A stretch of DNA of 64,000 nucleotides from Cyanophora paradoxa CCMP329. Its lineage: Eukaryota > Plantae > Glaucophyta. The stretch is taken from NCBI GenBank assembly GCA_004431415.1, contig QPMI01000056.1, positions 124,001 through 188,000 of the forward strand, in the 5' to 3' direction. Shown here one piece after another: positions 5,901 to 52,000 of the stretch (within the stretch, counting starts at the first letter, position 1; the number at the start of each line of letters is the position of its first letter). The translations under genes and the position numbers were made by a program. The notes beneath the pieces are model-generated. The model was not told the origin of the DNA and made no database searches. It saw only the letters and a program-made list of their open reading frames with translations.

Positions 5901-7988
5901 CCCTACGCTGACTACGTGCGCCTCTAAGACGAAGCCTTTCATGCCTTAAAACCTCGAGCGCCTTGCAGCCTCAAATTGCGAAGCCTTAGACTGCTTTAAG
6001 CATCTTTAGCTCCTTGAAATCTAGCTAAAGAGCCCCGCTTGAAGCCTTGAAGCCCTTGAGGCTGCCACGTCAACGCTCTTATTCTTCGTTCGCTTTAGAG
6101 CCTTGAAAGCTCGATCACCTCTAGCTTCGTTAGACTGGAGCGCCCCGCTTCGCTCCTCTCCCTCGGCCCGCGGGACTTCGCTTACGCTCTTCTTCTTCGT
6201 TCGCAGGGGTACAAGGGGGCGACGGCGCCGCCGTGCCGGGCGCGCTGCCCCGGCGGCAAGACGCTACGCCGCAAGGTCCGTCTATATTGAAAAAGAAGCA
6301 TTAGCTACGTTAGTTGTTAATAGACATTTAATTACTTAGGGGGTAAAGACTTTTAAAGACACCTAGGGCCGGGCCGGGCCCACACCAACTAGCGGGGGGC
6401 TGGGCTAGCTAGCTCCCCCCTCTCCCCTTCCCTGTGGATCTGATGCGGGGCGGCGCCGCGGGGCGGCAGGTAACGAACTACCAGTACGTCGGCGGCTTCT
6501 ACGGCAACTGCTCCGAGGTGCGCCCTGCAGCGGGCCTACAGCACCAGCTCTAGGGGCCGCCCTAGGCCACCGCCCCCCCCGGCCTCCCCCGGCCTCCCCC
6601 GCCGACCCCCCGGCAGGTGGGGATGATGCGGGCGATTCTGGAGGGCGGCCCCATCGTCACCGCCCTCAACGTGCCCCCTCTCTCCCCCCCCCCCCCCCCC
6701 CCCCCACCTCCCCCCCGCCCCCCGCGCCCCGGCCCTCCGGGCCCTCCCTCGCCGCCGTCCCGAGCCATTTGCCGTCCCGTCGCCGCCGCAATTTGCACGC
6801 CCTCGCCGCCCCGCCCCGCCCCGCCGCCCCGCCGCCCTGCGCCCCGGCCCTCCGGGCCCTCCCTCGCCGGCGCCCGAGCCTTTTAATTTGCCCGCCCGCC
6901 CCGGCCGCCTCCCTCGCCCGCTCCTCTCCCCGCCTCCGGATCCCCTCCCCCTGCGACGCCCCCCCCCCCCCCCCCCCCCCCGTCCGCCCCTTCCCACCCC
7001 CTCCCCCCCCCTTTCTCTCTTTCTCTCGCGCCCCGCCCCGCGCTCAGGCCCCGCTTCGCTCGCAGGCGAAGGACGACCTGGTGGCGTACAACGCGGGGGT
7101 ATACCACCACGTCCCCAGGCCCCCCGGCCCTCACCTCGAGGTCCGCGGGGCCACCTCGAGAAGCTTCTCAGCTCGGGCCCGGGTCTGATCGCGGGCGGCG
7201 CGGGCCCGTGTCTGGGCGCAGGGGATGGAGGACGCGTTCTTCGAGCCGACGAACCACGCCGTCGTCGTCGTCGGATGGGTGCGCCCGCCCGCCCGCTGAG
7301 CTCATTTGGACGCCTGGCTTAGGCAGCTGCTCTGGCTGGAATAGCTTAAGACCGCTGCCTAGCTGGAATAGCGCAATAGCTTATGATTGCGCACTCGTCC
7401 TTGACCTATATACCGTACTGGCTTATATAATTAGGCCGCCGCTCTAGCTGGATAAGCTCTAGCTCTAGCTAAGGCCGTCTACGTTTCGTCCTCTGATCGC
7501 CGCGCTCCCTCGCAGGGCGTGGAGGCGGCGAGCGGGGAGAAGTACTGGATCATACGAAATAGCTGGGGGGCGGACTGGGGCGAGGGGGGGTACTTCCGCA
7601 TCCGCCGCGGCACCGACGAGTCCGCCGTCGAGGCCGAGGTGCCCCCACTGGTTAGAAGCTTGTTCTAAGATCGTCTAGAAATCATTCGAAGCTTAAGCTT
7701 GTTCTTAGAACCTTGCCCATTCCCGGAACCTTGGAGCCTGTATAAATCCGATGCAACTCGCTAGAGATAGCGATTAAAAGAACCTAGAGAACCTGCCGCC
7801 CCCTCCAGCTCCCCACCCCACCCCACCCTCCCTGCGGAGCTTCCCCCCCCCCCCCCCCTCTCCCGCCCCGGCCTCGCCTGAGCCCCCCCCCCCCCCCCCC
7901 CCTCTCCCCCCAGGGCGTCTTCGCGGACCCCGTCTTCCTCCCCGGCGACCTCGGGCCGCCCTCGGCCTCGAGCGAGGCGCCGGCCTAG
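2981..7988 (+). CDS. CTSC: Cathepsin C / dipeptidyl peptidase I-like papain-family (C1A) cysteine protease, multi-exon
   Basis: Signal peptide [21 protein letters not shown] followed by DTPPA, then the exclusion domain ([21 protein letters not shown]...HWACF) and pro-region [10 protein letters not shown]. The mature domain has LPENFDWR, catalytic [36 protein letters not shown] and [29 protein letters not shown] at 7986-7988. Confidence 0.92.
3861..3939. mobile_element. Small intronic hairpin/MITE-like element with 25-bp perfect terminal inverted repeat
   Basis: CGGAGAGATAGCCTAAGGTGGCTTA ... TAAGCCACCTTAGGCTATCTCTCCG, flanked by a ~30-bp imperfect direct duplication (~3833-3862 vs ~3937-3966). 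Confidence 0.6.
5387..5499. mobile_element. Second member of the GAGAGATAG hairpin element family, in a cathepsin C intron
   Basis: Its right end CTCTACCGCCACACCTAAGCCACTTAGGCTATCTCTCCG is the reverse complement of 3861-3900 (1 nt gap). It is followed by a copy of the upstream exon end and 5' splice site. Confidence 0.5.
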
Positions 7989-9313
7989 GGCCGTAGCCTC
8001 GTGGGGGCTCGGGCCCTGGGGGTCCGCTCGGGGCGAGCGAGGCGTGAATAGATAGCTATAGATAGGTAGCGCCCCTTCCGCGCGGCTCCATATGTTTGGT
8101 AGGGAAGGGGTGTTTAGGCAAGATATCGGTAGCTTTGAATATTCGCTGCAGCTTTTTCTTCGAATTCAAGAGCTAGGAGCCCGGGCTTATGTCTGTTCAT
8201 AATTCTTTGCGAGGTGGGTAGCGCCTTAGTTAGCGTGAACGTTTTTAATTCTCTCAGAGTCTTGCTCTTTGCTTTCAAGTTTTGCTCTTAGAATTTGCAA
8301 ATTGTAAGTATCTATAGCTTGAGGCAGCCGACCGGACCAGCCTTCCTGTTCATCAGGCTTTAAATGATCATGATGTCCGGACCGACCGGACTATTGGAGT
8401 CGCGGCCGGCGGCTCTCCTGGCGGGGCGACGTCGGCGGTCCGGCCAGCGGGCATGGTCCGCCAGGAGAGCCGCCGGCCGCGACTGCCCGGAGAGAACCGT
8501 CGGCGGGGCGCCAAGTACCCCTGCGCATGCTGCGCCCCGCCCGGGCCCGGGGCGCGCGACGGGAGGGGCGCGCGGGCCCGGCGGCGGCCTCCCCGCGGCC
8601 GGCCCTCGAGCTCGGGGCCCGGCCGGGACAGCACCGTCGCCGCCGGTGCCGCGCGCGGCCGTCCCCGCGCGCGCCGGCGGCTCTACTAGCGGGTCGGCCG
8701 CCGGGCCGCGGGGCCGCGCGCGAGGCTCACGATATCATATGCACGATGCGCTCCCAGCTGCGTATGCGCATGCGGCCGCTCGGGACATGCAGATTGTGCA
8801 CGTTCGAGAGCCGCCGACTGCGCCGCGCGCGCCCGCAGCGTGCGTTGTTGCTGCGGCAGGCCGCTTGCAATTGGTGCTCGAGGGCGCTTGCAATTGCTCC
8901 GAGCTCGAGCGCGGACCGGAGCTCGAGCGGGAATCGAATCGAGGTGGATGCGGGCAGGCTGGTCGAGCTGCCCGCATCCGCCTCCAACGCGCCTGCCCAG
9001 CGCCGTTGCTTCGTAGCCGCCTGCGTTTTGTGCCGGCTTTGACAACCGCTTTGTTCGGTTTGCAATTGGGGTACAATACCCTCATCGTCATCGTGGTTTC
9101 TGAGAGAGAGCACTCGGCGGCGAGACGCAGGCCCAGATGTACATGTGATTGTAGACTGAGCTCGAGCCGAATCGATAAGCCTGCATGACGCATCAGGACG
9201 CGTCAGGACGCATCAAAAACGCATCAGCAGCATCAAAAGCCACTGCAGCCTGACCGTCGACGTCGTAACAGAGGGCACCCTTATCACCCGCACCTTGCAC
9301 CAGCTGAGCGCAG

Positions 9314-12300
9314 ATGGGCTGCTGCAAGTCCAAACCGAATTTAGGCAGTCGCAACGCAGCGGCAACGAGAACCGCGAATTCGAAGCTCGAGGAAGTGACT
9401 GTAGTAGTTTCGGAACGTCCGTCGATCCCAGCGACCCCACTGGTCCCATCCGCGCAGCCTAGGCCTGCAGCCGCACCTGCTGCTGCATCGGCGGCCCAGG
9501 TTTCGGCAGCTCGTCAAGATGGGGCACCCCAGCAGCTCGTTGTGCACGGCGTGCCGGTAGAATGGCCAGCCGCTGCGGTCCGAGCTCCTTCGACGGCCCC
9601 GCGGCCGGCTGCGGCTCCCTCGGCCGCGCTCCGGGACGGTCAGCTGGCCCAGAAGCGCGTCGTGCGCATCTTCGTCTCCTCGACCTTCCGTGCGCGCGAT
9701 TGGACGCCGTCTAGGCCAGCGCAGGCCGCGGCCGCCCGTCCCTTCTGACCTGTGGCCGCGCCGGCAGAGGACATGCAGGCGGAGCGCGACGCCATCCGGA
9801 GCTTCGTAAACCCGACGCTGAAGGCGATGTGCGCGGAGCGCGGGCTCTTCTTCCACTGCGTCGACCTCAGGCCCGGCCCGCCTGCGATTCGATCTGGCCT
9901 CCCTTGAACTGACGCCGCGCGCCGCAGGTGGGGCATCAACGAGGAGGCGTGCAAGGCGGGCTTGGTGACTCTCCTGTGCCTGCGCGAGGTATCTCGCAGC
10001 ACTCATTTCGTCGGCCTGCTCAAGGTGCCGCCCTCCCTGCGCGACGCCCGAGGTCCGGGCCGGGGCGCCCGCCGACGCACCGCGATGCAACACAGGCCCG
10101 CTACGGGTGGCACCTGCGGCCCGACGCGCCCACCGACGACAAGGACAACGGTCTCTTCCGCCTGTACGCACCATCCCGGGCCCAATCCTTTCCGAGGAGC
10201 CGCCGGTGACCGGACGCGCTGCGCAGGAACCTGAACCGCGCGGCGGAGGAGTTCCCCTGGGTGCGCGAGTGGGAGGACCGCAGCGTGACCGAGATCGGTG
10301 CGTGCACAAGCGGGCTCCGGGCCGCGGCCGCCTTCTTAGCGGGCCGCGATCAGAGATCCGCGCGGGCGTACTCGGTGGCGCGGCGCGGACCGCAGGGGCG
10401 GGGCCCCCCGCCTCGCGCCTCGAGGTGCGGCCCGGCCCGCAGCGGCCGCCGCTTCGCTCGCCGCTTTCGGCGCCGTCGGCTCACTGCCCGCCCTCAGGCG
10501 ATGCGCGGCAAGAGTCTGTTCTACGTTGCCGGGCCGGGCCTGATGCGAGACGCCGTCGCCACCGGCGGGGCCGGGGAGGGTGCCTACGCCAAGCAGCGCC
10601 TGGAGGCGCTGAAGGGCGAGATCCGCTCCGCCGGCCTGCCCGTCGCCGAGTACCCCGACGCCCAGCGGCTCGCCCTCGCCATGCGCGACGCCCTCAAGGC
10701 GGTGCGCGCGTACCCCGGCTTCGATCGTCTGCCCGCCCCCTGACCGTGGCTGCAGAGGCTTGAGCAGGAGTTCCCGCTCGAAAGGGAGCGGCCGTGGCTG
10801 GAGGCGGAGCGGTCGCATCACGAGGCGTTCGCGGCATCGCGGCAGCGCGTCTTCGTGCGCAACCCGGAGGACATAGACACGCTGAGCGCCTATGCGGCGG
10901 CCTCGGGCCCCGAGGTCCTCGTCCTCCATGGCGAGGGCGGCTGTGGCAAGAGCGGTGCGCCTGCAGCCACCGGGCATATGCGCATGGTCCCGTTGCTGAC
11001 GGCGGGCCGCGCAGCGCTGCTTGCAAACTGGGCGCGGGAGTGGGCCGCATCGTACCCCGACGACCTGGTGGTCGTTCACTTCATCGGTGGATCCCAGAGC
11101 AGCTCACTGCTCGCGTCGGTCGCCCGGTTCGCGTACTCCACCGCGCCTCGTCCCCCACGCTCCCGCCGATTCCGTTCTGCCCGACAGGCGCATCAGCGAG
11201 GAGGTCCGCGGTCGGTGGCCCGGGGCCGAGGCCATCGACCTGCGCGGCACGGACGCCGAGGTGGCGGCCCGCCTGAGCGCCTTCCTCGCTGCCAGCGCCG
11301 GCTGGCCCTTCCGCGCCGTCCTCATCATGGACGGGCTGGACCAGCTGCGGGGCGACCCGGCCGCGACAGGCCTCGCGTGGCTCCCGCCCGCCGCCGGCCC
11401 CCGCCTCGGCATCCTCGTCTCGAGCCTGCGCGGTACGGCTCCCACTGCAGCTGAGCCTTGGCGCCCCGCCAAAGCGGCCCGGCAGGCCCGACGCTGGACG
11501 CCGCGATGGCGAGGGCGCACATCGCCCGCGAGGTTGCACCCCTCACGGAGGCCCGGTGCCGGAGGCTGGTCGAGGGCGTGCTCCGTGAGCAGGGGCGTGC
11601 CCTCTCCGACGAGCGCCTCGAGCGGATCGTGCGGGCGGAGGCATGCCGCAACGCGCTCTTCCTGACCGTCCTCCTCGATGAGCTCTCGGCCGTCTCCGTC
11701 CACGCAAAGCTCGATGCCGACATCGACGCGCTCCTTGGCTGCGGAGGCGAGCCGCGGGACCTCTTCCGCCTCGTCTTGCGCCACCTCGGCTCGCGCCACG
11801 GGGCGGCCCTTGCGCGGGACGTCGCGTCGGCCATCGCCTGCGCGCGGCACGGGATGGCGGAGGACGAGCTCAAGGCATTCGTGGGCGTGGACACGAGTGG
11901 CGGGCCACGGGAAGTCGACTGGAGCCTCTTCTGGCATGACTTCCTGGGGCTCGTCGTCTGCCGCGACGGCCCGTACGCCTTCTTCCACCGCTGCACAGCC
12001 GAGGCGGCGGAGCTCGAGTTCGGCCTTGCGGGCGAGTGGACGGCCGAGCAGCAGGCGGTCGTCCACGCGCGGCTGGGCGAGTTTTTTGCCACGCAGCCGG
12101 CCTCGCAGCGGCGCGCGGAGGAGGGCCCATGGGCGCTGGCGCGGGGTGGGCCCAACTCGAGCGAGCGCCTGGCGGGCATCCTCTGCGACCCCGACATCCT
12201 CAATCGACTGGACGAGTACGAGCGAGTGGGCGGTCCGACGAGGCTGCGGTGCGCTACGCAAAGGCGCTACGGCTGGGGGACGAGGAGGCGAACCCTGGCG

Positions 12301-15300
12301 AGCTAGACAACGCCGGCAACCTGCTTCACAAGATGGGACGAGCCAGCGAAGGCATCCAGTTCCTGAAGGTGAGGCAGTGCTTCCTTGGCCACTCAGATAC
12401 GCCCAGCTCCCTCAACTCTCCCGTCCCTTGCAGGAGGCTCTGCGGCTGCGCAAAAAGGCGCTGGGGCCGGAGCATCCGAACGTTGCTGTGGAGATGCAGA
12501 ACCTGGCCAACCTGCTGCACACCCAGGGCGACTACGCGGCGGCGCGGCCCATGTACGAGGTGCGGCACGCGTCCCCCTGGATCGTTGCGGCCCTGCGCCT
12601 TCCTTCGATCGCGAGGCCCCGATTCAGGCCGCCCCTCGCAGGAGGCGCTGCGGGTGCACAGGAAGGCGCTGGGGCCGGAGCACCTCTATGTCGCAGGGAC
12701 AATGCAGAACCTGGCCATCCTGCTGGAGGACCAGGGCGACTACGCAGCAGCGCGTCCCATGTACGAGGTGCAGCGCAAGTCCCCCTGGCTCGTTGTGGCC
12801 GTGCTTCTTCCTGCGAGGCCCCGACCGCCGACCGGGGCCCCTCGCAGGAGGCACTGCGGGTGATCAAGAAGGCCCTGGGGCCGGAGCACCCGGACGTCGC
12901 GACGGCGATGCAGAACGTGGCCAACCTGCTGAAGGCCCAGGGCGACTTCGCAGCAGCGCGGCCCATGTACGAGGTGCGGCGCAAGTTCCCCTGGCTTGTT
13001 GTGGCCCTGGTCCTGCCTCTGAGGTGCCACCCCGGCCCGCCCCTCGCAGGAGGCGCTGCGGGTGAAGAAGAAGGCGCTGGGGCCGGAGCACCCAGACGTC
13101 GCGGGGACAATGCAGAGCCTGGCTGCCCTGCTTCAGGCTCAGGGCGATTACGCAGCAGCGCGGCCCATGTACGAGGTGTGGCGCGCATCCCCCTAGAGCG
13201 TTGTGGCCCTGCTCATTCCTCCGCCCGACCGGGGCTGCCCCTCGCAGGAGGTGCTGTGAGTGTTCAAGAAGGCGCTGGGGCCAGAGCACCCGGATGTTGC
13301 GGGGACAATGCAGAACCTGGCTGGCCTGCTGAAGGACCAGGGCGACTACATGGCGGCGCGGCCCATGTACGAGGTGCGGTGCACATCCTCCTAGAGCGTT
13401 GTGGCCCTGCTCCTTCCTCCGAGGCCCCAATGTGTTCCGCCCCTCGCAGGAGGCGCTGCGGGTGTACAAGAAGGCGCTGGGGCCGGAACACCTGGACGTT
13501 GCTGCGACGACATCGAACCTGGCCGGCCTGCTTCAGGCTCAGGGCGATTACGCAGCAGCGCGGCCCATGTACGAGGTGCAGCACGTGTCCCCCTAGATCG
13601 TTGTGGCCCTGCTCCTTCCTCCGAGGCCCCGACCCGGAACGACCCTCGCAGGAGGTGCTGCGAGTGTTCAAGAAGGCGCTGGGGCCAGAGCACCCGGATG
13701 TTGCGGGACAATGCAGAACCTGGCTGGCCTGCTGAAGGACCAGGGCGACTACATGGCGGCGCGGCCCATGTACGAGGTGCGGTGCACATCCTCCTAGAGC
13801 GTTGTGGCCCTGCTCCTTCCTCCGAGGCCCCAATGTGTTCCGCCCCTCGCAGGAGGCGCTGCGGGTGTACAAGAAGGCGCTGGGGCCGGAACACCTGGAC
13901 GTTGCTGCGACGACATCGAACCTGGCCGGCCTGCTTCAGGCCCAGGGCGATTACGCAGCAGCGCGGCCCATGTACGAGGTGCAGCACGTGTCCCCCTAGA
14001 TCGTTGTGGCCCTGCTCCTTCCTCCGAGGCCCCGACCCGGAACGACCCTCGCAGGAGGTGCTGCGAGTGTTCAAGAAGGCGCTGGGGCCAGAGCACCCGG
14101 ATGTTGCGGGGACAATGCAGAACCTGGCTGGCCTGCTGAAGGACCAGGGCGACTACATGGCGGCGCGGCCCATGTACGAGGTGCGGTGCACATCCTCCTA
14201 GAGCGTTGTGGCCCTGCTCCTTCCTCCGAGGCCCCAATGTGTTCCGCCCCTCGCAGGAGGCGCTGCGGGTGTACAAGAAGGCGCTGGGGCCGGAACACCT
14301 GGACGTTGCTGCGACGACATCGAACCTGGCCGGCCTGCTTCAGGCCCAGGGCGACTACGCGGCAGCGCGGCCTATGTACGAGGTGGGGCGCAAGTCCTCT
14401 CTAGCGCGTTGTGGCCCTGCTCCTTTCTCCGAGGCCCCAATGCGTTCTGCCCCTCGCAGGAGGCACTGCAGGTTAAGAAGAAGGTGCTGGGGCCGGAGCA
14501 CCCGGACGTCGCGACGACGATGCAGGGCCTTGCCGGCCTGCTGAAGGCCCAGGGCGACTACGTGATGGCACGGCCCATGTACGAGGTGCGGCACGCATCT
14601 TCCCCCTGGATCGTTGTGGCCCCACTCCTTTCTCCGAGGCCCCAAACCGGGCCTCCCCTCGCAGGAGGTGCTAAAGCTTCGTAAGAAGGCGCTGGGGCCG
14701 GAGCACCCGGACGTTGCAGCGGCAATTTTGAACCTGGCCATCCTCCTCCAGGCCCAGGGCGACTACGCGGCAGCGCGGCCTATGTACGAGGTGTGGCGCA
14801 CGTCCCCCCTAGAGCGTTGTGGCCCTGCTCCTTAAGCTTCCTCTTGAGGCCCCAATGTGTTCCGCCCCTCGCAGGAGGCACTGCGGGTGTACAAGACGGC
14901 GCTGGGGCCGGAGCACCCGGGCATCGCGAGAACGATTTTGAACCTGGCCAACTTGCTTGAGGACCAGGGCGACTACGGGGCGGCACGGCCCATGTACGAG
15001 GTGCAGCACGTGTCCCCCTAGATCGTTGTGGCCCTGCTCCTTCCTCCGAGGCCCCGACCCGGAACGACCCACGCAGGAGGCGCTGCGGGTGTACAAGAAG
15101 GCGCTGGGGCCGGAACACCTGGACGTTGCTGCGACGACATCGAACCTGGCCGGCCTGCTTCAGGCCCAGGGCGACTACGCGGCAGCGCAGCTTATGTACG
15201 AGGTGCGGAGCACGGCCCCCCAGATCAGCGGACTTGCTCCTTCCTGCAAGGCTCCGACCTGGGCCGCCCCTCGCAGGAGGCACTGCGGATTAAGAAGAAG

Positions 15301-15795
15301 GTGCTGGGGCCGGAGCACCCAGACGTCGCGGCGACGATGCAGAACCTGGCCATCCAGCTGTTATGCCAGGGCGACTACGCGGCGGCGCGGCCCATGTACG
15401 AGGTGCGGCACGCATCTTCCCCCTGGATCGTTGTGGATTTGCTCCTTCCTTCAAGGGCCCGACCTGGGCCGCCTCTTGCAGGAGGTGCTGCGGGTGTACA
15501 AGAAGGCGCTGGGGACGGAGCACCCAGACACAGCGTATTCAATGGGCTGCCTCGGGGACCTCCTCTCGAGGCTGGGGACGAGGGCGGGCCTCTCTGAGGC
15601 CGCGCCACTCCTCGAGGTGTGCACGTGTTTGTGGCCCTCTGTTCCGCCGACACAGCCCGTCTGACCACTGTCGACGTCCGCGCCGCCTCGTGACCGCAGG
15701 CCGCGCTCCCGGTGCTCGAGCGGACTCGGGGACCTCAGCACAAGGAGACATCGTTTGTTCGGCAAGCACTGGAACGTGTCAAAAATGCAAAGTAG
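9314..15795 (+). CDS. DUF4062 + STAND/NACHT-like P-loop NTPase + 42-aa TPR array with N-myristoylation motif (nephrocystin-3-like / NLR-like architecture); carries lesions as assembled
   Basis: MGCCKSK start; RIFVSSTF.DMQAERD...VDLRWGI (DUF4062-type); Walker A HGEGGCGKS; Walker B VLIMDGLDQL; NALFLTVLLDEL; FFH motif. Then 15 single-repeat TPR exons, a 135-nt variant exon (15482-15616) and a last exon 15700-15795 ending in TAG. Lesions: frame break ~12220, TGA at 13257, 1-nt deletion at ~13706. Confidence 0.8.
12434..15616 (+). repeat. Tandem exon+intron array, ~200-bp unit (126-nt exon + 72-84-nt intron) x15 plus a variant terminal exon
   Basis: Exon starts at 12434, 12642, 12848, 13050, 13248, 13450, 13652, 13853, 14055, 14257, 14460, 14665, 14875, 15077, 15277 and 15482. 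The first 15 run CAG|GAG...ATGTACGAG|GT, all phase 0. Confidence 0.95.
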
Positions 15796-31771: not shown

Positions 31772-34700
31772 ATCGCGAGCTCGAGCTCGCCGTCGTGGGC
31801 ACTGACGGCCCGCGGGCGCACCTCGTCGACCTGCGGGGCGGAACCTTTCTGGTCGCCCTTCCGATGCCGGAGGGGCCCGTCGACTCCGTCGCTGTGCACA
31901 TCGCCGGGAACGTCGACGGCCGCCGCGGGTTGAGCGTCTCCGCGGCCGGCGGCGGCTCCGTTCGCACCTGGTCCCTCGAGCTCCTCCGGATCGCCGCGAT
32001 CCCGGCGGCCATGGCCATCCATGGCCGCAAGCGCGCGCCCCTCGAGTCCGAGACGATTGTCATCGAAGGGAACACCAGCACGACTTGCGAACTTGCACAC
32101 ATGCCCCAAGCAATCTATTCCACGTGCACCGTCGCCTTTTCTGGCTACACGGGCGCCTTCCAAGTTTTCGTCTGCAACGCTTCCGTCCCGGACATCTCCT
32201 ACAGCGACGCCACCCCTGGCTGCAACTTGGTAGGCTTCCTGGCTGACCGCGGACTAAAAAACATAGGGCCTCGTCCTCATTCAGCAAAAGAAATAATAAA
32301 TGCTTCGCTCTCGCAGTTTGCAAACTCGCAGCACGTTCAGTTCGAAGATGGCACATTGAAGCACGTCATGGGCACTATCTTCGATCAGGAAAATTTTTTG
32401 AGCGTAATCTGCGGACCGGGTGCAAGCAGGTGGGTAGAGCATAACTAGTATTATCTGTCTGGGTGTATCATATATAGTATATAGGCGCTTCTACCCAGTG
32501 ACTGAGCCTCCGCCTTTCATAATCATCGCCTGTGTGCATGCGCAGCTCGGGGTGTAAGGCGAAGTGGGTCGTGGTTTCCAGCACATCGCCAACGACTTTT
32601 GCAACACGTGCCGTTGTTTTAAAACCAGGTTTGAGGCCCATTCACGGATCTAGCTGTAAAGTCAGTGTATTAAACACTGCTTACATTGATATCGCGCAGC
32701 CCCATTGGTGCAAATTGTTTCTCCGACAGCGGATGTTTGTGTAATTGGAAAGCCATGCACTATTGCTTGGAACATCAGGGGTTCTGCTGCTGTCTCGATC
32801 GCGAACGTTTTTGTCTGCGGGGACCCCGACCGCATCGATATCGAAACCTATCCATCGTTCAAATGTGAACAGGTTTGCCCTGTACTAATACGATATCATA
32901 TTGAATATAATTACCGGTTAGACTTTATACTAATAAAATTAGCCTTCGAGCTCCTGTACATCTAGATCTGCAGATACATGCACAGATCTAGAGGACCGTT
33001 AACCTCATGCCTCCTGCAGATAGCGACTGAAGTGACCAGCCCCGCTCTGGTCATGATGACCTCGAATATCTGGCACATGTTCTGCAACGATTCTACACCG
33101 CGTCCTCGGTGCTCTTTCGAGCTTAAATCGCGATCGACGTCATGTGGAGTCGATTCCAGCCGTGCAGCTCACGCTGATTTTGAGCCCGATGGTCGCAGGT
33201 GCCCGCAGCGCGCTGCGTTAAGTTGGAGGGTCGGAGCATATATACGTGTACAGGGCAGTGACAAAAGCCTCACGAACATTTTAACCCAGTTAGACTTGAG
33301 CTCGCATGCCTTCGAGCTCCGAAATATTCGCGATCCTGCCGGTGAGCTCATGATATATTATATATGAACCGTGGCAGCGCTTATAATTATTGTCGATCTT
33401 TCGCGAGCGCAGTTCCGGAGGACCCCATTGCGGTCTCTGATACCAGCAATGCCACGTGTTTTGCACAGAACGACATTTTTCAGCCTACCTGTACCATCGG
33501 CTGGTCGGGCTACGCTGGCATAGTCTCGGTCTTCCTCTGCAGCTTGGCCGTCCCCAATGTCTCCTATGACCGCACCACATCCGGATGCTTCGAGGTGCTT
33601 TGCGATATCTAATATTTATCTCTATTATGATCGGCTTATATATGATTACGTGTGGACGCAATTGCGAGCAGCTCGCGCATGAAGATTCTGTTTACGGTAC
33701 CTCGGTCCAAGTCGTCATCAGCAAGGAAACTCTCGCTACTGTTTGCGCGTGCAGATCGGGCAGGTACTTCTCCTTACGCGCATTACGCGATTGTGTCTCG
33801 TGTCTGATGTCCTCACACCTACAGATCAATTTGCACCGCAAAGTGGGTGGTGGTTTCGAGCACATCGCCCTTGAACTTCGCCACGCGTATTGTCGTCATG
33901 GAACCGGGTTTGTTGTCTTGATATATTGCGTACACGATGGAAAATGTTTTGGATGACGCAATCGCTCGGGCCGGGGCTCGAAACGCAGCGCCCATCGACT
34001 TTCAGATTTTCCCAATGAAATCCTCCACGGCCATCTGCTATGTCGGCCAGCAATGTGCGATCGGCTGGAGCGGATACACGAATGCTGATTTATTTATATG
34101 CGGAAATACGCAATTGAACCCGAGGACGCCAGCCTGTGTCAAAGTGCGTTGCATAGCGAATCGACGTATTTATCATGCATATCCTCATGATCATGATCAG
34201 GTCGCTACTCGAGCGAGTAGCCCCGCTTCGGTCGCAATCACTTCTATAATCTGGGAATTGTATTGCGATCCGTACACAACGGCATCTGAATTCTATACGA
34301 CTCGGTGCGAATGAGGTTTTAGATTAATTCTCGGCACATTGCCGCAATGATATGTCGTCCAATTGCTCTACCGTAATAGTACATGTACAGTCGTCAAATA
34401 CTGATGCTGCATGCGCAGTTGTACAAATGAGTTTACCGGCTTATCGTGGAAGGTAGTGGTGGAGACAAGTCTCGGTCCCATCACAAGGGTCGCCAGTTTT
34501 GAGCTTCGTAAAGCACGTAACTACACAGGTGCTGAGCTATAACTTTAGGGTGCTCTCTACAGTTTAAGGATCACTGTGTGTTCGATCGCAGTTCCGGAAG
34601 ACGCTATCGCCGTCCTCAGTACAAGCCATTCGGAGTGCATAGAGTACTCGGAATTCGAGAACACCTCCAATCCGTGCTTCGTCTCCTGGGCGGGGTACAA

Positions 34701-37462
34701 CGGCCTCGTCTCCATCCTTATCTGCGACTCGGGCGTCCCCGACGTCGCTTACAAGTACGATACTCCGGGTTGCTACGAGGTAATGTTAAGTTTACGTTGT
34801 GTGTTATAATAAATTCAACGATGCATGACATGTACACATCTCGCGCCCGCGCGCAGCTTGACTACACAGACTCGGCATATGGAATGACGTTGAATGTTGC
34901 GCGTCGCGGCTTTTTCACGAGCACAGCCTTTCACACGCCAGCGACTTTGAAATGGGTCGTCGTGTCGAGCACGTCACCAACGAACTTTGGCACGCGCGCT
35001 CTCGCATTCCAAAGTATTATATGGTTTGGCGGTGCGCATTATAATTAATAGAATCTTTTGTCTTTCGTCTACCCCCACGTGCACCCACCCACGTGCCCCT
35101 CCCCCCCTTCCCCCCCCCCCCCCCCTCACTCCCCCGCGCACCTCCGCACCCACATGCATGCGTACGGATCAGAACCCCTACTGCTTCGGATCGTCCCACC
35201 GACGTCATACTCCTGCACCATCGGCCAGCCCTGCGTGATCGCCTGGAGCTTGTATCTGGCCTACGTGCAAGTGATGCTTCTTAATTGATGCTTCTATGCT
35301 CATGCACCCCGCCAGCGCCATTCCGAACTAGCTTTCCTGATACCAATTAATATTATATAATTAGCTCCTGATGCCAACTTTTCCTATGAATGTATATATA
35401 CGTCCGACGGTCTTTCCTTCGCGCAGAAGGCGATTGCTACTAAAGTGACAAGCCCTGCTTCGGTCACGATCAACTCGAATATGTGGTGTCTGTACTGTTC
35501 CGGGTCCGGAGCTGCTCCGGATCCGGCATCCGGGTGCACCCTAGCGCGCGTTTGATGGCGCCTCATTTTGCATGGAGTCGTCATTCATTCCGCACAGGTG
35601 TAAAGTTTCATCATCGGTGCGATTCAGACTCGTGTACTTGGAACCGATTGTCAGGCGCTTTATTCAGAGAGAATCTCCAAATATTGAGCTTCTTCACGGT
35701 CCGATTCTGGTGATTGCAACGTTTGGTGATTGGAACCTTGATTGCAAGCATACAGAAATGCCGAACGAGCTCTGTTCTGATGACATTCAATGCCCAACTC
35801 CGGTTGCGTCGCCGTCGCCGTCAGCTACACCGACGGAGCCGTCCCCGATGCCGGCACCGGCGCCGTCGCCGTCGACGTCCCCTTCGGGCGCCGTCAACGG
35901 CCTCCCCTCCACGGAGCCGAGGCCACGGAGCCCACAGCGCTAGCGACGCCGGCGCGCACCCGCTGCTTGCAATGATAATGATATCGATAATGATAATGAC
36001 CGTTCCCGACGCACTTTTACAGACTTTGACTGCGGCGCCTTCACCCACCCCGCGATCCGACGACGCTGCTCCCCTTCCGCCGCTCGTGCGCTGTCGCACA
36101 CTTTCGAACGATTCCTCACGTTTATTCTCAGCTCATGATCGTGCAGGATTTCCTCAAGCGGGGTCCGAATTTCCGAGCTGCCTTGGGGGCTTTTTGGGCG
36201 AGACTCTTTTCGAGTTTTTGTTGTGGATTCCTGAGACTGCAGCTTATATAGTAATCGCCCTCCCAGATCGCCCCAGGAAATTTCACGAAGACCAAGGACA
36301 GAAACGGCAACTACATCTACAGAATCGAGCTCCCCATGTTGCTGGTCATCATCCCGCCGGTAGGCCTCGCGCTTCCCTCTGCAGCTGGATCTAGATCTTC
36401 GAATTTTGCACGGCCCCGCACTGCAGTTGTCTGACTCCAGCGTGCGTCCAGTCGACGTCCGGCTCGATAAGGGTGGTTGCGATCCCTGTGGTGGGCAATC
36501 CCTGTTGAATGCATATATGTAAACGCCTCCCATCTTGAAGTTTACCGGATTTTCCGCGCGCCTGCAGACCGGACTCCTTAAGGCGACCGCCTCTCGATCT
36601 GTCACCACACATCGCGGTCGTGCGCTCTCTCACATGCGCAGCAGGCGGGACAACGGCTGAGGGTGATTGTCGAGAGCGACGCCGACGCCGGGGACCAGCG
36701 GGAGGCGGCCGAGGTGGAGGTCGCCGATGCAGACGTCGACGGCGCCCTGCAGACCGTGCTCCGATTCCGTGCGCCCGTTAAACGTTCCGAGGCTCTAGAT
36801 CCCTCGCGATCGGCATCGCAGCGGCTGCTGCAATCAGCACCGCGGCCGCTCTAGATTTAGATCTAGATCCGACGATCCCTCGGCCTTGAGGATGCATTTC
36901 TAACCGCTGCCTCCACGGCGATCGCGATTGCGAGCAGTGCCGCCGTCCCTCAACCGGCGCCGCGTCCTGTTCGCCTTCCAAGCCGGAAAGAAGGCGAGAA
37001 ATTGCAATGGGGAAACATGTTATGTTATTTGACGTCCGCGCGCCCGCAGTACGACCTCCGCGTCGAGGCCGGCCCGGGCGAGCCTCCGTTCGTCCCCCTC
37101 GTCTTTGGCGGGGTCCGTCCACTCGCTTCGCATTTATTCGCAATTCATCTTTGCGATAATCCAACTATTATATTACTATAATTAAGTAGCGGTCTCACAA
37201 GACCGCTCTCCTGCCCCGCAGGCCGTCCAGTGGACTCAGGGCACCGCGGCCGGCGTCCTAAGCGCGCCCTGGCCATCCCTGAACGCGGCTCGTGGCCCAC
37301 CCCCGGTTCGCCAGCATACATATATCATAGTATTGGACTACTTTGCGTCCTAGGCCTCGCAGCGAGCCCTTACGATCGACTATTATCGCGCAGAATATGT
37401 GGGGCTGGCTCTTGAGCTTGGCGGTTGTCATTTCCTGCTCGTTTTTTCTGATTACCATTTGA
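30168..37462 (+). CDS. Large putative surface protein: signal peptide, WD40-like propeller, three copies of a Cys-containing two-part module, Pro/Ser/Thr stalk, hydrophobic C-terminus
   Basis: Signal-like GLALGICLAFIVDVAAAHA; WD40-like VSISPDGSHVATSG..VKVW, TLRVWDLR and SVRTWSL. Three copies each of KWVVVSSTSP..F.TR, C..G..C.I.W and AT...SPA.V.....W..(F/Y)C. Stalk PVASPSPSATPTEPSP; last exon NMWGWLLSLAVVISCSFFLITI-TGA. Apparent 1-nt deletion at ~35920. Confidence 0.6.
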
Positions 37463-37719
37463 GCGGTTCATCAACGTTTCCTGCTCGTTCATCAACGTTT
37501 TCTGCTCCTACACCGCAATGGAATTTCGAGGCCCGTTTACTGCGTATACAATGTGAATACTGAATACGAATTAATTCATAAAGTCTTTCGCCTTGCAATC
37601 CTACGGCTGTCTGTCGGTTTTGTTCTGTAGAGCGCCATTTATGAACCTTGGATGGGCCCCTTGAATTTTGTCTGGCCGGGCGCCGTGATGGGACCGGGCC
37701 GGGACCGGCCCCGACTCAT

Positions 37720-37900
37720 GATCACTGACCCACTACTTGCCGCCAGTGCCACGGTGATGCGGGGTCTCCCGGAGTCCGGCTGCGGGGACGTCGAGCGAGC
37801 GGCCGGGCCGCGGACGGTACTACACGGCGCAGGGCGAGCGCAGAACGGCGACGACGCCTCCCGACGACGAAGCAACGGGAAGGCGACGGGACCGCGGCCA
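37720..37900 (+). pseudogene. Degenerate inverted copy of an exon (plus upstream intron end) of the gene at 24839-26967
   Basis: Reads VMRGLPESGCGDVERAA/YYTAQGERRTATTPPDD, matching MRGLGGAGCADVERAASQYYTAQGERRTATTPPDDD at ~25190-25340, with a frameshift. Confidence 0.75.
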
Positions 37901-38141
37901 ATTGCAAGGGCTGTTTTGTGTCGGGTCGTCGTGTCGAGGCCCGGCCGCGGGCCCAGCCCCAGAAAATATTGCAATTGCCACAGTGCCCCTACCTCGACCT
38001 CCCTCCTCTATAGCTAAGCTCGAAGGGTCGGCTGCCGCGCGCGGGGAACCACCTTCTTACCTGGCCGGACCTATTCGAGCAAAATTTGTTTCAAGCTCGA
38101 AGGCCGCGGGCACCTCCCGACCCCCATTCCTCCCAATTAAT

Positions 38142-38142
<1 letters not shown>

Positions 38143-38220
<78 letters not shown>
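38143..38220. repeat. (CA)39 microsatellite
   Basis: Direct reading of the sequence. Confidence 0.97.
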
Positions 38221-38223
<3 letters not shown>

Positions 38224-38623
38224 CGACCCCTCTATCTGCTCTCCTCTCCAAGCGCTTTTCCCGCAAAGCGGAGCGTATAGACGTATCGAAATCACTCGAT
38301 TTCAAGAATTGAATTACAAGCTGATCATGAAGGCACGTCGCGATCGATAGAAGGAATCGTCTCCGGCCTCCCTCACGTTCCCCCCCTGCAGCTGATCATG
38401 ACCTCACCCCCTGCACGTTCCCGATACCCTCCGTCACATTAAAATATTTCCTTCCTGACCCCTCTATCGATATCTCGTGCTCTGATCGACCCCTCTCCAA
38501 TATTATATTAATATATATCTCTCGCTCCCATCAAGGAGAGGGCTTCTCCAAGCGCTTTTCCCGCGCAAAGCGGAGCGGTCAGATCGTAGCGGTGGAGCAA
38601 TATTAATATCTCGATCGCTTTGA

Positions 38624-40712
38624 ATGGCGAAGCGAACAGCGAAGCGCGCGCGCACGGAGGCGCCCTCGTCCCCGGCGCGCTCTTCTTTCCCAGCAGCGGG
38701 CATCTCTTCGTCAGCGCTAGCAGGCGCAGCGGAGGCGCCGACGGGCGGGAGCGGGGGCGGCGCGGGAGAGGCGCCGCGGCCGCGATCGCGATCAGCGCAT
38801 GCGTTCAATCATTTCGCGCGGCTGCCCGACGAGCTCGTGCAACGCATCTTCAGCAATATTGAAGCAACGGAGGCGTACGAGACGTGCCAGCTCTGGTCGC
38901 TGAATCGTCGGTTCAGCCGGCTCCTGCAGGGCGTGCAATGGCAGCAGCTCCGTGTCCACGATGAGCCCTGTGAGAGACTCGATGTCGATATCTCGTTCGA
39001 AACGCAGAATCGTTGCGCCCGAGTCACATCTCGCATCCGAAGCGGGGCACTGGCGGGATGCCGCAAGCTCATCATCGGCCCATCTCCAGCAGATCCATGG
39101 CGAAATCAATCGTTTCCCCAGCAAACATTAACGAAGGAGAAAGTGCAGGCGTGCTTTGACGGCGCCCGCTCTCTTGCAGGTATCTGCATTATTTGCCATC
39201 ACTCCAGAGCTTTCCACAAACAACTTCTATCCATGTTTAAAAATCAGACTTGGCAATGGAAAGATAATTAAATGATTTGCGTTCTGACGGTCGCTCTGCG
39301 CAGAGACGCTGGCGGCCCTGGCTTCAGCGGCTTTACCGCTGGAAACAATCCACTTCTCGGGCAGCTGGCGAAACTGGCCGGCAACAGCGACGCAGCGCCA
39401 GGCCGGCATTGCCGCACCGAATGTCTTGTCTCTTGAGGACGTCGCATTGGACTTTCTGACAGCGCTGCACCCCGCCCCTCTTCGATCGCTACAACTGGAC
39501 GACGAGGAGCTCACCTCAGCTTTCATCGCTGCTGCCGAGCAGCATTGCCTCCCTCACCTCCAAGAGCTGCGCATTAAAAATAAAGACCTAGGAGCTGAGC
39601 ACGCGGTTCGTGCTAGAATGAGCCCTCTTTCAGTCAATTCTAATTTTGTGCAGGCGAAGCTGGTGGAGGTCTGGCCCCGCCTGCGGGAGCTATCGTGCTA
39701 CCTGAGCGATGGGCACGCACTGCGGAACTTGGCCGCGCTTCCTCTGGAGGACCTGCGGGTCCTTTGCTTCTCATATGCCGGCCTGGAAGAGGCTCTCGAG
39801 GCACTCAACGCCGACTGCGTCCGGGAGCTGGAAATGGACGGGTTTTTCTTTGTTAGCTCCCGACGTGTTTTCGCCGCCATCCTCCGCTTCCGCAATCTGG
39901 AGAAGCTCTCAATCAAGGTTCGTCTTAATTCATGGTTGAATTAGTCTCCTCGGGCCTCCATGACTTCAACTTGGTTATATGTTGGGCTTAACCTGGGTCC
40001 CGTGCTCGTTCTCGTGCTCATTCAATTCAATTCTGGACCCAGGTCGATCACACGTCCAGCGATGCCCTCGCGGACCTGGGGTCTCTTACAAAACTGCGTT
40101 CTCTCGAGCTTCAACTTTCTGTGCGCCCTGCTCTTTGCTTCATGTCCTTTCGCCCTAGGCCCAGATTAATGTGCAGCGCAGATACGAGCCGCCCCCGACG
40201 GAGGCGCGGGCCTGCAGCTGCTGCAGGCTGCGGCTGCAGCGGCAACGGAGCTGTCCGCCGCCCCTCGGTTCGAGTCGTTCGCTTTGACGGTCGACGGGGG
40301 CGGCCCAGCGGGGCCCGAGATGGACCCCGGCAGCCTCGCGGCCCTCCTGCGCGCCTCCTGGCCCAAGCTCTTCCGGCTCGAAATCGTGCAGGTTCCCGCC
40401 GCGGCAGAAGTCATGCAGGTCGGTTTCTCCCTCGGAAGACTTTTTGAGAATTGTGAGCACCGCCAGCGCTCGCCTCTGATTGCCCTTTCGCAGGAAATCG
40501 CGCTGGCCCCTCGTGTTGCTGTATATATGATTCTTAGACACGCGTTTGCAGAGAATGACAGCCTCAACAAGCTGCGCGTCTTCAGCGAGCTGCTCGGCTC
40601 GTCAGCTGCCGGCCCTGTCATCGCATTGGACATCAAAGTCCCCGTCGCGCTTTTGGATCGGGCGCGCGCGATTCTCATCGGCTGGTTCAAGGCCAAGAGA
40701 TCTCAATATTAA
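38624..40712 (+). CDS. F-box protein with divergent leucine-rich repeats, multi-exon
   Basis: Basic N-terminus MAKRTAKRAR; F-box FARLPDELVQRIFSNI....C.L.SLNRRF..L; LRR-like PLRSLQL, LPHLQELRI, WPRLRELSC, PLEDLRV, FRNLEKLSI and LTKLRSLEL. Confidence 0.78.
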
Positions 40713-40809
40713 TCTTTGTCAATGATGTCAACCTGCAGCTCAGCTGCAGCGGCTGAGAATTTTAGACTCGATGCATCATCTGCCTCGGCCTTTCTGAAAA
40801 TCTGCGTCG

Positions 40810-42665
40810 ATCAAATCATGCATATTCGAATCAATACAAGAGAGTCCCTTCGGAGCAAGAGTGGGTCTGTAATCTCAATGATCTTGGGGCTTCAAGGCAT
40901 GAGGGGGATCGCTCTTTGTTTTTAAACGGGAGCCTGCAGCTCAGGGAGGGGGAAGGAGAAATAGGAGGGGGGACACTCGGCAAGGGTACACGCTCAAGCG
41001 TACTAGAAGTACAAATGGGTACCTCATTTCGAATTTTTAAACCTTATTTCGAATTTTTCCACAGAACAGGGACAGACCTAAGGGCCTCGCCTTTCCCCAG
41101 GGCCGATTCTCTGTCTCTTAAATTCTTCGAAATTGCAAGAATTATTAATATTGCCCTTCGATTCAGAAGTTATTTGTGTTCGAATTCGTGTTCCTTGCGA
41201 TCCGTTTCTTTTGCGGTCGCTTTAGGTTTGTATACGTATCGATATCGCGCGATCGGAGTATATTTTATATATAGCAGTATACTGAGTTCTTGAATTACTT
41301 TGACCAGTCAAAAATCGCTGGCATGCATGTCATTTAAGAAGCTTGCGCTACACCGACTACAGCGACCCAGGCTCCACCTCCCCGGCTCGCTCGTTCTATT
41401 TGGGGGGCTCGCTCGTGGGGAATTCGAATGGACAAAGGAGGCGGAAACTCCGGGACTGGGCGGGCCGGGGGACTGGGGCCATGAGCGCGCCCGTGGGTGT
41501 AGACGCAGGGCGTGGGGCTTAAGCTTGACGCTTGCAATCGACGAGAGGCTTGGCGGGGCTTGGCCGGCGGGGGCGTCGCCGCTGACTGGTGAGACGTACG
41601 GGGCGGCCGCGCCGCGGCGGGGCGGCGCCAGGGGAGGGCGGCGCCTGGCAGGGCGCGCGAGGGTGAAGTGGGGGCCGCGTGTAATCGTCCATTGAAGGTC
41701 CGGAACCGGTACCCCCGGGCGTGCCCGAACCAGCCGGGCGGCCGGGCGGGCGGCGGCAGAGACCGAAGCCGGCGGCCCGGCGGACCCGGCTGCATGGGCG
41801 CGCTAGTACTTGCAGACGCCGCGCAGCTCGACGCGGGCGGCGGGGAGCAGCCGCCGGAACGCCGCGAGGGTCCCCAGCTGCTCCGGCTTCTTCCGGTAGG
41901 TCTCACTCAGGAGGCGGATCTGCGGGGTACGTGAAGGCACATTAGTAAGGGGTGGGGTTTACATGCGAAGGGCGCGGGGGTACGGGAGCGGCGCGGACCT
42001 CGAGGCGGGCGCCGAGGGGCGCGAGGGCCGCGAGGACGTCGTACCCCGGGGGCACGTCGCCCGGGTAGGAGGGGAGGGGGAGGGAGAGGGCGACCGAGGC
42101 GAGGGGGGGCCCGCGGGTGGCGAGGGCGGCGAGGTCGCCCGGGGCCGGGGGCTCCTTCACGGCCAGGGCCAGGGACCGCAGAGCCGCCCCGCGCCGGCGC
42201 CCTCCAGCAGCGGGGACAGGGCGCCCCCCGGCGGCCCCGTCACGTCTGCACACACGGGCGGGCGGTCAGAGGGCGCCAGCGGGTCCGTGAGCTCCGTTGA
42301 ATGAAATGGGCCGCGCCGGATTCGAGCTCGAGGCGGAGGGCGGCGAGGGGCGAGCGGCGGATGGCCTTGCCAATTGCACGGTGTGAGACCAAGGCGCCCG
42401 GGGGGGCGTGCTCCAGGAACAGGTGAGCCTCCCTGAGCTTCCGAATCTGTCTGACGGTCCCGGGTAACTAGTAATTATTAATGCGCCCCGCGTGGTTGCA
42501 ATTATATTGTCACCAGCTTGGGCCTCCGTTTAAAAACAAAAAGCGAGCAACCTCATGGACACGCCTTCATGCCCCCAGCTCGACCCCAATTGTTGAGCCC
42601 CATGCCTGTCCCACGAAACCGCTTCAAAGATGACTACGTATACTGCGCCATTCATGATCGATATC
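40810..42665. mobile_element. Candidate decayed long-TIR (Mutator/foldback-like) element carrying a gene fragment
   Basis: CATGAGGGGGATCGCTCTTTGTTTTTAAACGGGAGCC (~40898-40934) is an imperfect inverted match to GGCCTCCGTTTAAAAACAAAAAGCGAGCAACCTCATG (~42521-42557). Weaker similarity extends ~100 bp outward. No TSD identified. Confidence 0.4.
41803..42420 (-). pseudogene. 5'-truncated fragment (last exons) of an LRR/F-box-type gene
   Basis: Exons ALRSLALAVKEPPAPGDLAALATRGPPLASVALSLPLPSYPG...LGARLE and IRLLSETYRKKPEQLGTLAAFRRLLPAARVELRGVCKY-TAG with an intact GT-AG intron. There is a frame break near 42190 and no start or upstream domain. Confidence 0.55.
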
Positions 42666-49000: not shown

Positions 49001-52000
49001 CGCTCATGAATAAGAAACGAGATGCGAGTTCCATCGTGGGAGGCTGCCGCGCGCACGGACGCAGAACTGGCCGTTGGCGGCCGCGACGGTGCCGTTGTCG
49101 CACTGCTCGCAGCGGTCGAGCCCGGGCGTCGCTGCGACCCAGTTCGTTTCGCACAAGATGCAGGAATCGTTGACCTGGTACGAGCCTTCGATACGGTTAG
49201 TCCCAGTCGGCGCAGAAAGAGATGGAAGTATCCACCCGCAGGGCAGGGAATGCAGATCGCTCGGGGCCCGTCAGCCACATAGCCCGCATCGCAAATGGTC
49301 CAGGTGGGCGAGCCGGCGAGTGCCACGGAGCGGAAAGGCACGGGCAGGCAGTCGGTCATGTTTTCGCCGCGGTACGTTCCTGGAGAAGCTTCAGTACAAC
49401 TTTCTAATTATATATAAGCTGCAGCTGCTCGGTAAAATGCGGGATTCGATTGCGAGCGTACCTGCACTGCACGGCACGCAGTTCTGGAGATCGGCCGCCG
49501 AGACGTATCCGGGCGCACACTGGAGGAGCAGGTGAAAAATGTCGAGACCGCAAACCAAACCAAAGTCCACACCAGCATGCAGGACGTCATGTTTTCAGCG
49601 GGGGTGATCGTGTTTGTAGCGCAGACGCGGCAAGCCCCGTCGTCCTCGTACGACCCTTTCGGGCACGGCAGGCACATGGACGCGACGTTGTTGGCAACCC
49701 AACCTGGCTCGCACCGCTGGAACCACGAGCGGCCCGGGACGGAGACTGTCTTGTGCGGCACTGGCTCGCATCGCGACATGTTCTCTGCCCGATACGTTCC
49801 TGCAGGGTCGTCAGCGTTCACAGGTGGAGTCCAGAAGCAAAAGAGCGATATCGATGCCTTCTGAGCACAGAAAGCAAGTCTGCTGGTCAGCTGAAGCAAC
49901 CTGTCCCGGGGGGCAGCGCGTGCAGTTCGCGCTGCCCTCAAACGGGGCGACCATATTCTCGGGGCAGCTGCGCGCAAAAGCATATTGTTAGCAACGTCAT
50001 ATGTATATAAAGTTCCTTGAAATTGTATCGGGCGCGCTGCGCGCGATCGCGCACTTCTGGCAGGTGTTGTTGAGCTCGTAGTACCCTTTGCTGCACGGCA
50101 GGCAGGTGTCCCGTGCCTGGTTGGCCACATAGCCGTCCTTGCATAGCACGAAGGACGCCGAGCCCTCCCTTGCGACTACATCCTCGAGGACGGGCTGGCA
50201 CGAGGCCATGTCTGCGCTGCGGTACATCCCTAGCAAGCCTGTCAGTTGCTCCGAGCGTGGATATAACATCAGAGAGGCTATATATCACACCGGCCGGACA
50301 CGGAATGCAGGATTGGAAGTCGCTTGCGGAGACGTATCCCGGCGCGCAGAGGCTGCAGATCGGGGTGCCTTCCAGCGAGGCCACAGTGTTTTGGGCGCAG
50401 CTGCCAATTTCACAAGATCTTCAGTTTTGCGCGCGAACACGGCAATATTAATCAATTGCAACAAAATAATGCGCACGTGAGGCAATTGTCATCAAAACGC
50501 GAGGTTCCTGTGGAAAGTGGGATAAATCAATGTTCGAATTCAGCGAATAGCAATGAAGAAATGTAGAGCGCGCCGAGAACTCACCTTTCGGGCACTTGAG
50601 GCACTCGCTCCTCTCGACGTTCGGGACCGAGCCGTTCCCGCAGACGGAGAAGGCGGACGAGCCGACCAGCGCGACGCTGCGCGCCCCGACGGGGAGGCAG
50701 ATGGTGGACTCGGCCGGCCTGTAAGAGCCTGGGGCTGCGCACACAACATCGGCAAAGATGCTCAAAATATTCGATGAATCAGCGGATATTAGAAGTAGGC
50801 TCACTGCATTCAAAGCACATGGTGAGGTCCGGAGAAGAGTAGGAGCCGAGCGGGCAGGCGGTGCAGTTCGTCGAGGCCTCCAGCGGCGCGATCGTGTTCA
50901 CCGGGCACGGGGTGCAGACGCCGGGATTTTCGGCGTCCTCGTACGTCCCCGGCGGGCACTGTTCGTGGAGAATTTGAAAGTGAGTAGCGCGAAGTTCCAC
51001 GGTGCGGTCGCATGCGCAGTTGCAGCACACCGGAATGCACTGCAAGCGGTCGGGAAGGCTAATGTACCCGGCAGGGCACCGACTGCAGCCCAAGCCAGTA
51101 GGAGATGCGTAGTCCTGAAAACACAGATCGCAGGCGCGAGTGCCTTCGGGGCTGATTTTAACCTCGAGCCCCGGTGGACACAGCTTGCAGCCATCCCCGT
51201 TGTCGTTGGACAGCTGGTTCGCGGGGCAGGCGAAGCAGCTGCCGAACTGGCCTGCGCGGCTCCAGGTTCCTATTGGGCATGGCTCGCACGGCTCGTTCTC
51301 GCGGCGTTGGTACCAGCCGGCCTGCAGTCAGACACGTTCGACTTCAGCTAACCAGTTTCAGCACTCAGGTCGCATTTGCATGCGCTCGGACCGTGCAATT
51401 CGTGCAGTCCGATCTCTCTTGGTTCGGAAAACTACCTCGCGGACCTGTTCCAAGCAAGTCAGACTTCATAGTCTTTTTCCTCGAATTGAGTCTAGAAATG
51501 CGCTTACAGTTTGAGCAACTGTCTATCGTTCCGTACGAAGAGTACTGGTGTGCGGGACAGCCGAGACAGAAGAGCCGATCGCTCGCTGTTCGAAGGAAGA
51601 GGCCAGCAAAGCTGAATCGAAGAACCGCACGTGAGATCATATGAGTCACGATTCTGTTGCCGTTCTAGAAACCAGTAGTCGCGAGCGAGCGCGCACCATT
51701 TGAAGCACTGTGCCGTCCAGCGGTCGCGCACGGTGAACGCGCCCGTCTCGCACCGCGTGCACGGCATCCCCTCGGACAGGGCGAACGTGTTCTGCGGGCA
51801 ATTGTAGCACTCCGAGCTCCCGGACGCCGACCAGGTCCCGGCGGGGCACGGCAGGCACGCCGTCGCCCCTCCCGTGCTGTAGGTCCCCTCGGGGCACCGC
51901 TCCGCCTCCGACTCGATGAGGAGCCCCGTGCGCGTCGAGAAGAGGCCCGGCGAGAGAGGCGTGCAGAGGTCCTTCACGGAGACCGACCGCTTGAAGGCGG

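Follow-up and report, generated by a model that had tools for sequence, protein, structure and literature searches.

The gene at positions 9314-15795 (forward strand) of the 64,000-nucleotide stretch of Cyanophora paradoxa DNA analyzed here (the window) has probably died recently and is still transcribed; it belongs to a DUF4062-NACHT-TPR (NLR-like) expansion specific to this lineage. Its N-terminal MGCC is followed by DUF4062 and a NACHT domain, and an array of TPR-period exons lies at its end (Table 1). The original prediction described a working, membrane-anchored recognition receptor, whereas its repeat sensor is out of frame both in the DNA and in a spliced RNA contig.

Table 1. Features of the repeat-array gene, in positions of the window
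Feature	Position	Strand	Remarks
Exon 1	9314..9689	+	MGCC N-terminus (candidate myristoyl/palmitoyl anchor), low-complexity linker, start of DUF4062
Exons 2-6	9768..10424	+	DUF4062 (TIR-like) domain; motifs DLRWG, CLREV, RYGW, RSVTEIE
Exons 7-10	10498..11432	+	NACHT-type STAND NTPase; Walker A GEGGCGKS, Walker B MDGLDQ; RNA joints
Exon 11	11486..12368	+	helical/winged-helix region and first TPR-like linker; bears the frameshift; weak NPHP3_hel match
19-nt deletion relative to close paralogs	12223..12224	+	2 nt where paralogs code for 7 residues; frame shifted
Premature stop of the spliced frame	12304..12306	+	788-aa product ending in 27 out-of-frame residues
Array of 15 one-period TPR exons	12434..15402	+	phase 0, separated by homologous 72-84-nt introns
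Recent higher-order duplication	13248..14382	+	two-exon block A-B in three copies (array exons 5/7/9 and 6/8/10)
In-frame TGA, array exon 5	13257..13259	+	CpG transition from the CGA of exons 7 and 9; unconfirmed in reads
GGG for GGGG, array exon 7 (125 nt)	13705..13707	+	frameshift; in no contig
Displaced copy of B-type intron and B-type exon (fourth copy, downstream)	15001..15188	+	intron 13 / exon 14
Capping repeat exon and last exon	15482-15616, 15700-15795	+	135 nt; last exon ends in TAG

From the ATG at 9314, 11 exons lead through the DUF4062 domain and the NACHT-type NTPase to the array. The locus is transcribed and spliced, as seen in RNA contigs: the joint 9689>9768 supports the first intron, and several introns of the gene are spliced out in these contigs, their joints being absent from the DNA contigs. 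Letters specific to array exon 15 occur in RNA, and thus the far part of the array is transcribed as well. The second intron (9871-9927) is of the GC-AG type, and its GC donor is required for the DLRWG frame. The public model for the locus, tig00000215_g18555 (P0158), contains four repeats identical to array exons 1-4, and the C-terminal pattern of a capping and a last exon is also found in paralog P0008. The sequencing runs differ from the window and among themselves at 9539-9540 (X8) and 9583 (X1, X18), which may reflect collapsed paralogs or strain differences. A search of the window for further copies of the array or the core detected none. The upstream neighbor (6400-7990, forward strand) is a gene for a papain-family, cathepsin C-like protease, whose exon 7516-7635 matches Peptidase_C1 (E 2e-12). 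Elsewhere in the window, cysteine-rich ephrin-receptor-like/TNFR-like repeats on the reverse strand (51507-52499) are part of a probable large surface protein, and a stretch with 50-60% GC (32000-41000, in a context of 65-73% GC, with a (CA)39 run at 38143) is possibly derived from a mobile element.

The DUF4062 region matches the TIR-like domain of TEP1 (PDB 11gz, E 8e-18), and Pfam DUF4062 is found on P0158. The NACHT model scores above its cut-off in paralog P0008, and NB-ARC has no match in P0008 or P0158, where NACHT/AAA_16 is found instead. Matches to the locus were sought with its single exons, and the public proteins P0158 and P0008 served for folding and further searches. The near-invariant RSVTEIE motif (SVTExE) is kept in the locus, and its Glu may be the equivalent of TEP1 E1008, as judged by residue counting. 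Together with the Walker A and B motifs, the MGCC at 9314 and the repeat array, these matches uphold the DUF4062-STAND-TPR identity and the MGCC start that had been read from the letters alone, and the locus shares with NLR-like STAND proteins an N-terminal effector domain joined to a Walker A/B NTPase. DUF4062 has been described as a TIR-like NADase family in a preprint (bioRxiv 10.64898/2026.05.01.722283), according to which only TEP1 is active among the four human DUF4062-NACHT proteins, full-length NPHP3, NWD1, and NWD2 showing no NADase activity in its assay; thus the activity of the algal domain is putative. As in TEP1, NWD1/2, NPHP3, and the bacterial Swarozyc proteins of the same preprint, the TIR-like domain adjoins NACHT, and NPHP3 has TPRs too. 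The Arg equivalent to TEP1 R908 is Gln in the Cyanophora locus, and the animal DUF4062-NACHT genes are single-copy and conserved, in contrast to the large expansion in this alga.

At least 33 related gene models, the present locus counted, were found in C. paradoxa, and an MG start is present in 11 of 29 paralog models. Outside the alga, the closest relatives are for the most part DUF4062-NACHT-TPR proteins of prokaryotes or metagenomes; the prokaryotic ones have the same domain order and 30-36% identity over the core, but lack introns and fall on a separate side of the tree. In the NTPase-core tree (a quick tree with no root test, with two short rows dropped and animal NPHP3 not included), a 100% branch separates the 27 algal rows from the others, which are mostly prokaryotic or metagenomic. 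Could the family be non-immune and supply a scaffold or trafficking protein, acylated and similar to NPHP3, with its array homogenized by neutral concerted evolution and its exposed groove sites under relaxed constraint? The domain order and the N-terminal Gly are as in NPHP3, and there are matches to the NPHP3-family Pfam models; these matches, however, stay below the cut-offs (NPHP3 20.1 versus 33 bits, NPHP3_N 21.7 versus 24.8, NPHP3_hel 21.9 versus 27.9). Such sub-cut-off core models and the multi-copy family do not fit a nephrocystin-3 orthologue (animal NPHP3 being outside the tree), whereas the number of paralogs, the variable repeat number, and the gene death fit birth-and-death evolution. 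With the nearest non-algal relatives being as described, we consider this role quite improbable. The large gene family turns over fast, and the locus is most likely a dead member of it.

In outline, the predicted array is real. Fourteen of its 15 exons are 126 nt long, and all are bounded by GT..AG, in phase 0, preceded by CAG and followed by GT. The exon and its intron form a single unit (TRF period 202, 15.3 copies), and the array introns are homologous to each other, as had been predicted (mean identity 0.76, minimum 0.67, versus 0.55, maximum 0.61, for shuffled controls), and not to the introns flanking the array. Each array exon encodes one period of the kinesin-light-chain-type 42-residue repeat, and a structure model covering repeats 1-4 (pLDDT 97) resembles KLC1 with a TM score of 0.94. 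In this model helices lie at 15-30 and 34-52, so that helix A corresponds to exon positions 15-30 and the splice junction falls inside helix B; thus an array exon is one 42-aa period rather than one structural TPR. The claim that each TPR is a single 126-nt phase-0 exon therefore holds for 14 of the 15 exons as a statement about periods, but not about structural repeats, and it passes over the 125 nt of exon 7 and the in-frame TGA of exon 5. In intron 12 (14791-14874), a 6-nt insertion turns CTT into CTT-AAG-CTT, an inverted triplication.

Upstream of this array the gene is interrupted. Relative to the closest paralog it lacks 19 nt, including a Trp codon conserved across the paralogs, and in consequence the reading frame of the helical region ends at 12222, the linker and the array following in a different one from 12225. 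An assembly error at 12223 was ruled out: DNA contigs of two runs (2012 and 2024; X1 record 7, X8 record 29) match 12099-12552 without difference, and a spliced RNA contig (X16 record 13) joins 12099-12366 to 12432-12552, again with no difference from the window. All the sequencing runs may stem from one strain lineage. As encoded by the main transcript, the protein has 788 aa and no sensor. A C-terminal repeat sensor in frame with the NTPase is found in paralogs such as P0008, and at the locus neither the DNA nor the spliced RNA contains one. No rate acceleration was observed downstream of the deletion, and thus the lesion is recent.

The public model bypasses the frameshift through an intron at 12233-12306, which restores the frame. 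This intron was rejected, since RNA contigs of both runs (X16 record 13, X18 record 22) retain its sequence while the next intron is spliced, and since the same sequence is conserved coding sequence in the paralogs; the public gene model thus conceals the frameshift behind an unsupported intron. Several cryptic GT-AG pairs could restore the frame. One candidate donor (GTGGGC, 12226-12231), just past the deletion and in phase 0 of the upstream frame, could splice in frame to TPR exon 1, and no such joint is listed among the RNA contig joints. The combinatorial splicing invoked in the original prediction would need such a bypass together with skipping of exons 5 and 7, which the phase-0 exons would permit, and repeat exons of brown algae have been reported as alternatively spliced. 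In the RNA contigs of two runs, which drop rare forms, no reliable exon skipping was detected within 9300-13651. Both RNA runs contain a single joint of array exon 1 with exon 4; its short side, however, measures 24 nt, and transcripts of paralogs, also present there, could explain it. A receptor repertoire generated by such splicing is therefore very unlikely.

The gene might also be alive in a shortened form. As a regulator, decoy, or partner of the intact paralogs, a sensorless DUF4062-NACHT-helical protein of 788 residues could be likened to the truncated TIR-NB proteins of plants; the 5' frame is open over 11 exons with putative catalytic and Walker motifs intact, spliced RNA is present, and the branch on the tree is short and without acceleration. 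A recent pseudogene, however, would look identical, and the putative protein would end in 27 out-of-frame residues. Furthermore, the stop precedes 17 introns, and a transcript with a stop upstream of so many introns is a typical target of decay. We regard a living sensorless gene as unlikely. The dead-copy reading is favored by the frameshift being real in DNA and spliced RNA, by the stop at 788 aa, and by the unaccelerated sequence beyond it, whereas the cryptic GT-AG pairs, the loss of rare forms from the contigs, the persisting transcription and splicing, and two lesions inside the array that lack read confirmation count against it.

These two lesions, the stop in exon 5 and the base loss in exon 7, had been missed in the original prediction along with the 19-nt deletion. 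RNA pieces on exon 5 show one difference and no gap, as would be expected of exon 9, in contigs that drop minority variants. The G missing from exon 7 sits in a G run, a place typical of long-read error, and the loss may be an assembly error; the assembly, of an alga that is probably haploid, was made from PacBio reads and corrected by Illumina majority rule. The read contigs were compared directly with 9300-13651, and thus with array exons 1-6; the block beyond contains a 281-nt exact repeat.

Within the array, the two-exon block of 404 bp stands three times, the copies being about 99% identical. Between blocks 1 and 2 there are 3 differences in 404 positions, two of which are the disabling ones. 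In the displaced downstream copy, a single base of 76 separates intron 13 from intron 8, and exon 14 is identical to exon 10 over 112 nt; exon 13 is unrelated, with 24 of 126 positions differing. The nearest relative changes from unit to unit along most of the array, and clonal descent is rejected by the PHI test whether the near-identical copies are kept or removed (p=0.0005, the lowest value attainable with 2000 permutations). The triplicated block, the displaced copy, and the PHI test vindicate the unequal crossover proposed in the original prediction: array units have evidently been exchanged by in-register unequal crossover or conversion, in part recently. Given conversion within the array and exons that are mostly still open, the dead copy might be kept as a reservoir of TPR cassettes to be donated to live paralogs. 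Yet the best repeat in the four closest paralog models matches in 35 of 42 residues, there is no sign of transfer between loci in these models and no near-identical repeat, and donation was rejected; as an explanation of the locus, a reservoir is extremely improbable. In the closest paralog, P0008, two kinds of repeat alternate over 786-1079 (S/M at TPR position 2), a hint that duplication by two units is recurrent in the subfamily.

The residues named as variable in the original prediction are all present at the given repeat positions. Exon positions 19, 22, 23, 26, 29, and 30 correspond to TPR positions 2, 5, 6, 9, 12, and 13 (numbering set by the conserved core), which are peptide-contact positions for the ligand (PMC1261162) and uphold the predicted place of the variable sites in the groove. 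Over 10 non-redundant exons, pN at these positions is 0.40, versus 0.08 outside the predicted variable set, with an overall pS of 0.31 (permutation p=0.0008), an excess of amino-acid change at the groove. TPR positions 12, 9, and 2 are the most variable in the pool of close paralogs too, four repeats of the present locus being part of that pool. Codon likelihood (a GY94 script on a fixed tree) gave omega of 0.94-1.51 for the groove and 0.11-0.23 elsewhere; the groove values do not differ significantly from 1 (p 0.82 and 0.11). M2a was only marginally better than M1a (p 0.079 and 0.025) and singled out exon positions 6 and 26, in a test that recombination can inflate. Amino-acid change is thus concentrated at the groove, dN/dS above 1 being only borderline. 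The repeat scaffold was under purifying selection, and the groove was free or mildly favored to change. Omega of about 1 at the groove under F3x4 is what the NPHP3-like role would lead one to expect, although the same groove sites vary in the paralogs.

The likeness to brown-algal genes and fungal NLRs noted in the original prediction stands. In Ectocarpus, 13 of 24 NB-ARC-TPR genes have 126-nt exons encoding 42 aa, some exons are dead, and 5 of 24 genes are probable pseudogenes (PMC3341825). The Cyanophora locus shares with them a STAND NTPase, 126-nt one-repeat exons (14 of 15), local duplication, recombination between units of the array, exons apparently disabled by a stop or frameshift, and probable gene death. 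It differs in its NACHT-type NTPase in place of NB-ARC, and in the DUF4062 effector, the MGCC start, the short homologous introns, and its unicellular glaucophyte host. Set apart by this NTPase class, the Cyanophora layout is probably independent of that of brown algae. Fungal NLRs with highly conserved TPR repeats (Podospora 42-residue repeats, PDB 4y6c/4y6w) resemble the locus in the KLC-type 42-aa repeat, concerted evolution, and variable sites on the concave face, and their repeat number is polymorphic across isolates, but their effector domains are different and the one-exon-per-repeat layout is not part of their description (PMC4986451). Our literature search found no paper joining Cyanophora, NACHT, and TPR, and nothing relevant on Cyanophora or glaucophyte NLRs. 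The layout, the dead exons, and the pseudogenes have precedents in the NB-ARC-TPR genes of brown algae, and the DUF4062-NACHT chassis in a glaucophyte is a new version of this design.

In the intact paralogs, the N-terminus would be lipid-anchored (acylated), the groove of the TPR solenoid would bind ligand, NACHT would oligomerize after groove binding, and the TIR-like DUF4062 domains would then cluster and cleave NAD+. As the sequence shows, the sensor is altered at the DNA level, misaligned crossover and gene conversion adding, deleting, and mixing whole repeats in frame because the exon and its intron constitute one homologous 200-bp phase-0 unit; point changes gather at the groove positions, as an excess with borderline positive selection. 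In the present copy, the 19-nt deletion evidently uncouples the array from the switch, and the array would thus no longer be translated from the main mRNA.

The locus, which cannot itself be a working receptor, preserves direct evidence of gene death and of very recent in-register duplication. The family points to a second origin of STAND sensors with one repeat per exon, this time on a DUF4062-NACHT chassis and in a unicellular lineage that is sister to plants. A tentative extension, which we consider possible but doubtful, is that the glaucophyte maintains a repertoire of NLR-like, NAD-cleaving proteins of independent origin, whose arrays would gain, lose, and swap whole exon-intron units very fast, perhaps even in culture, and whose sensorless or dead copies, such as the present one, would be by-products or regulators.
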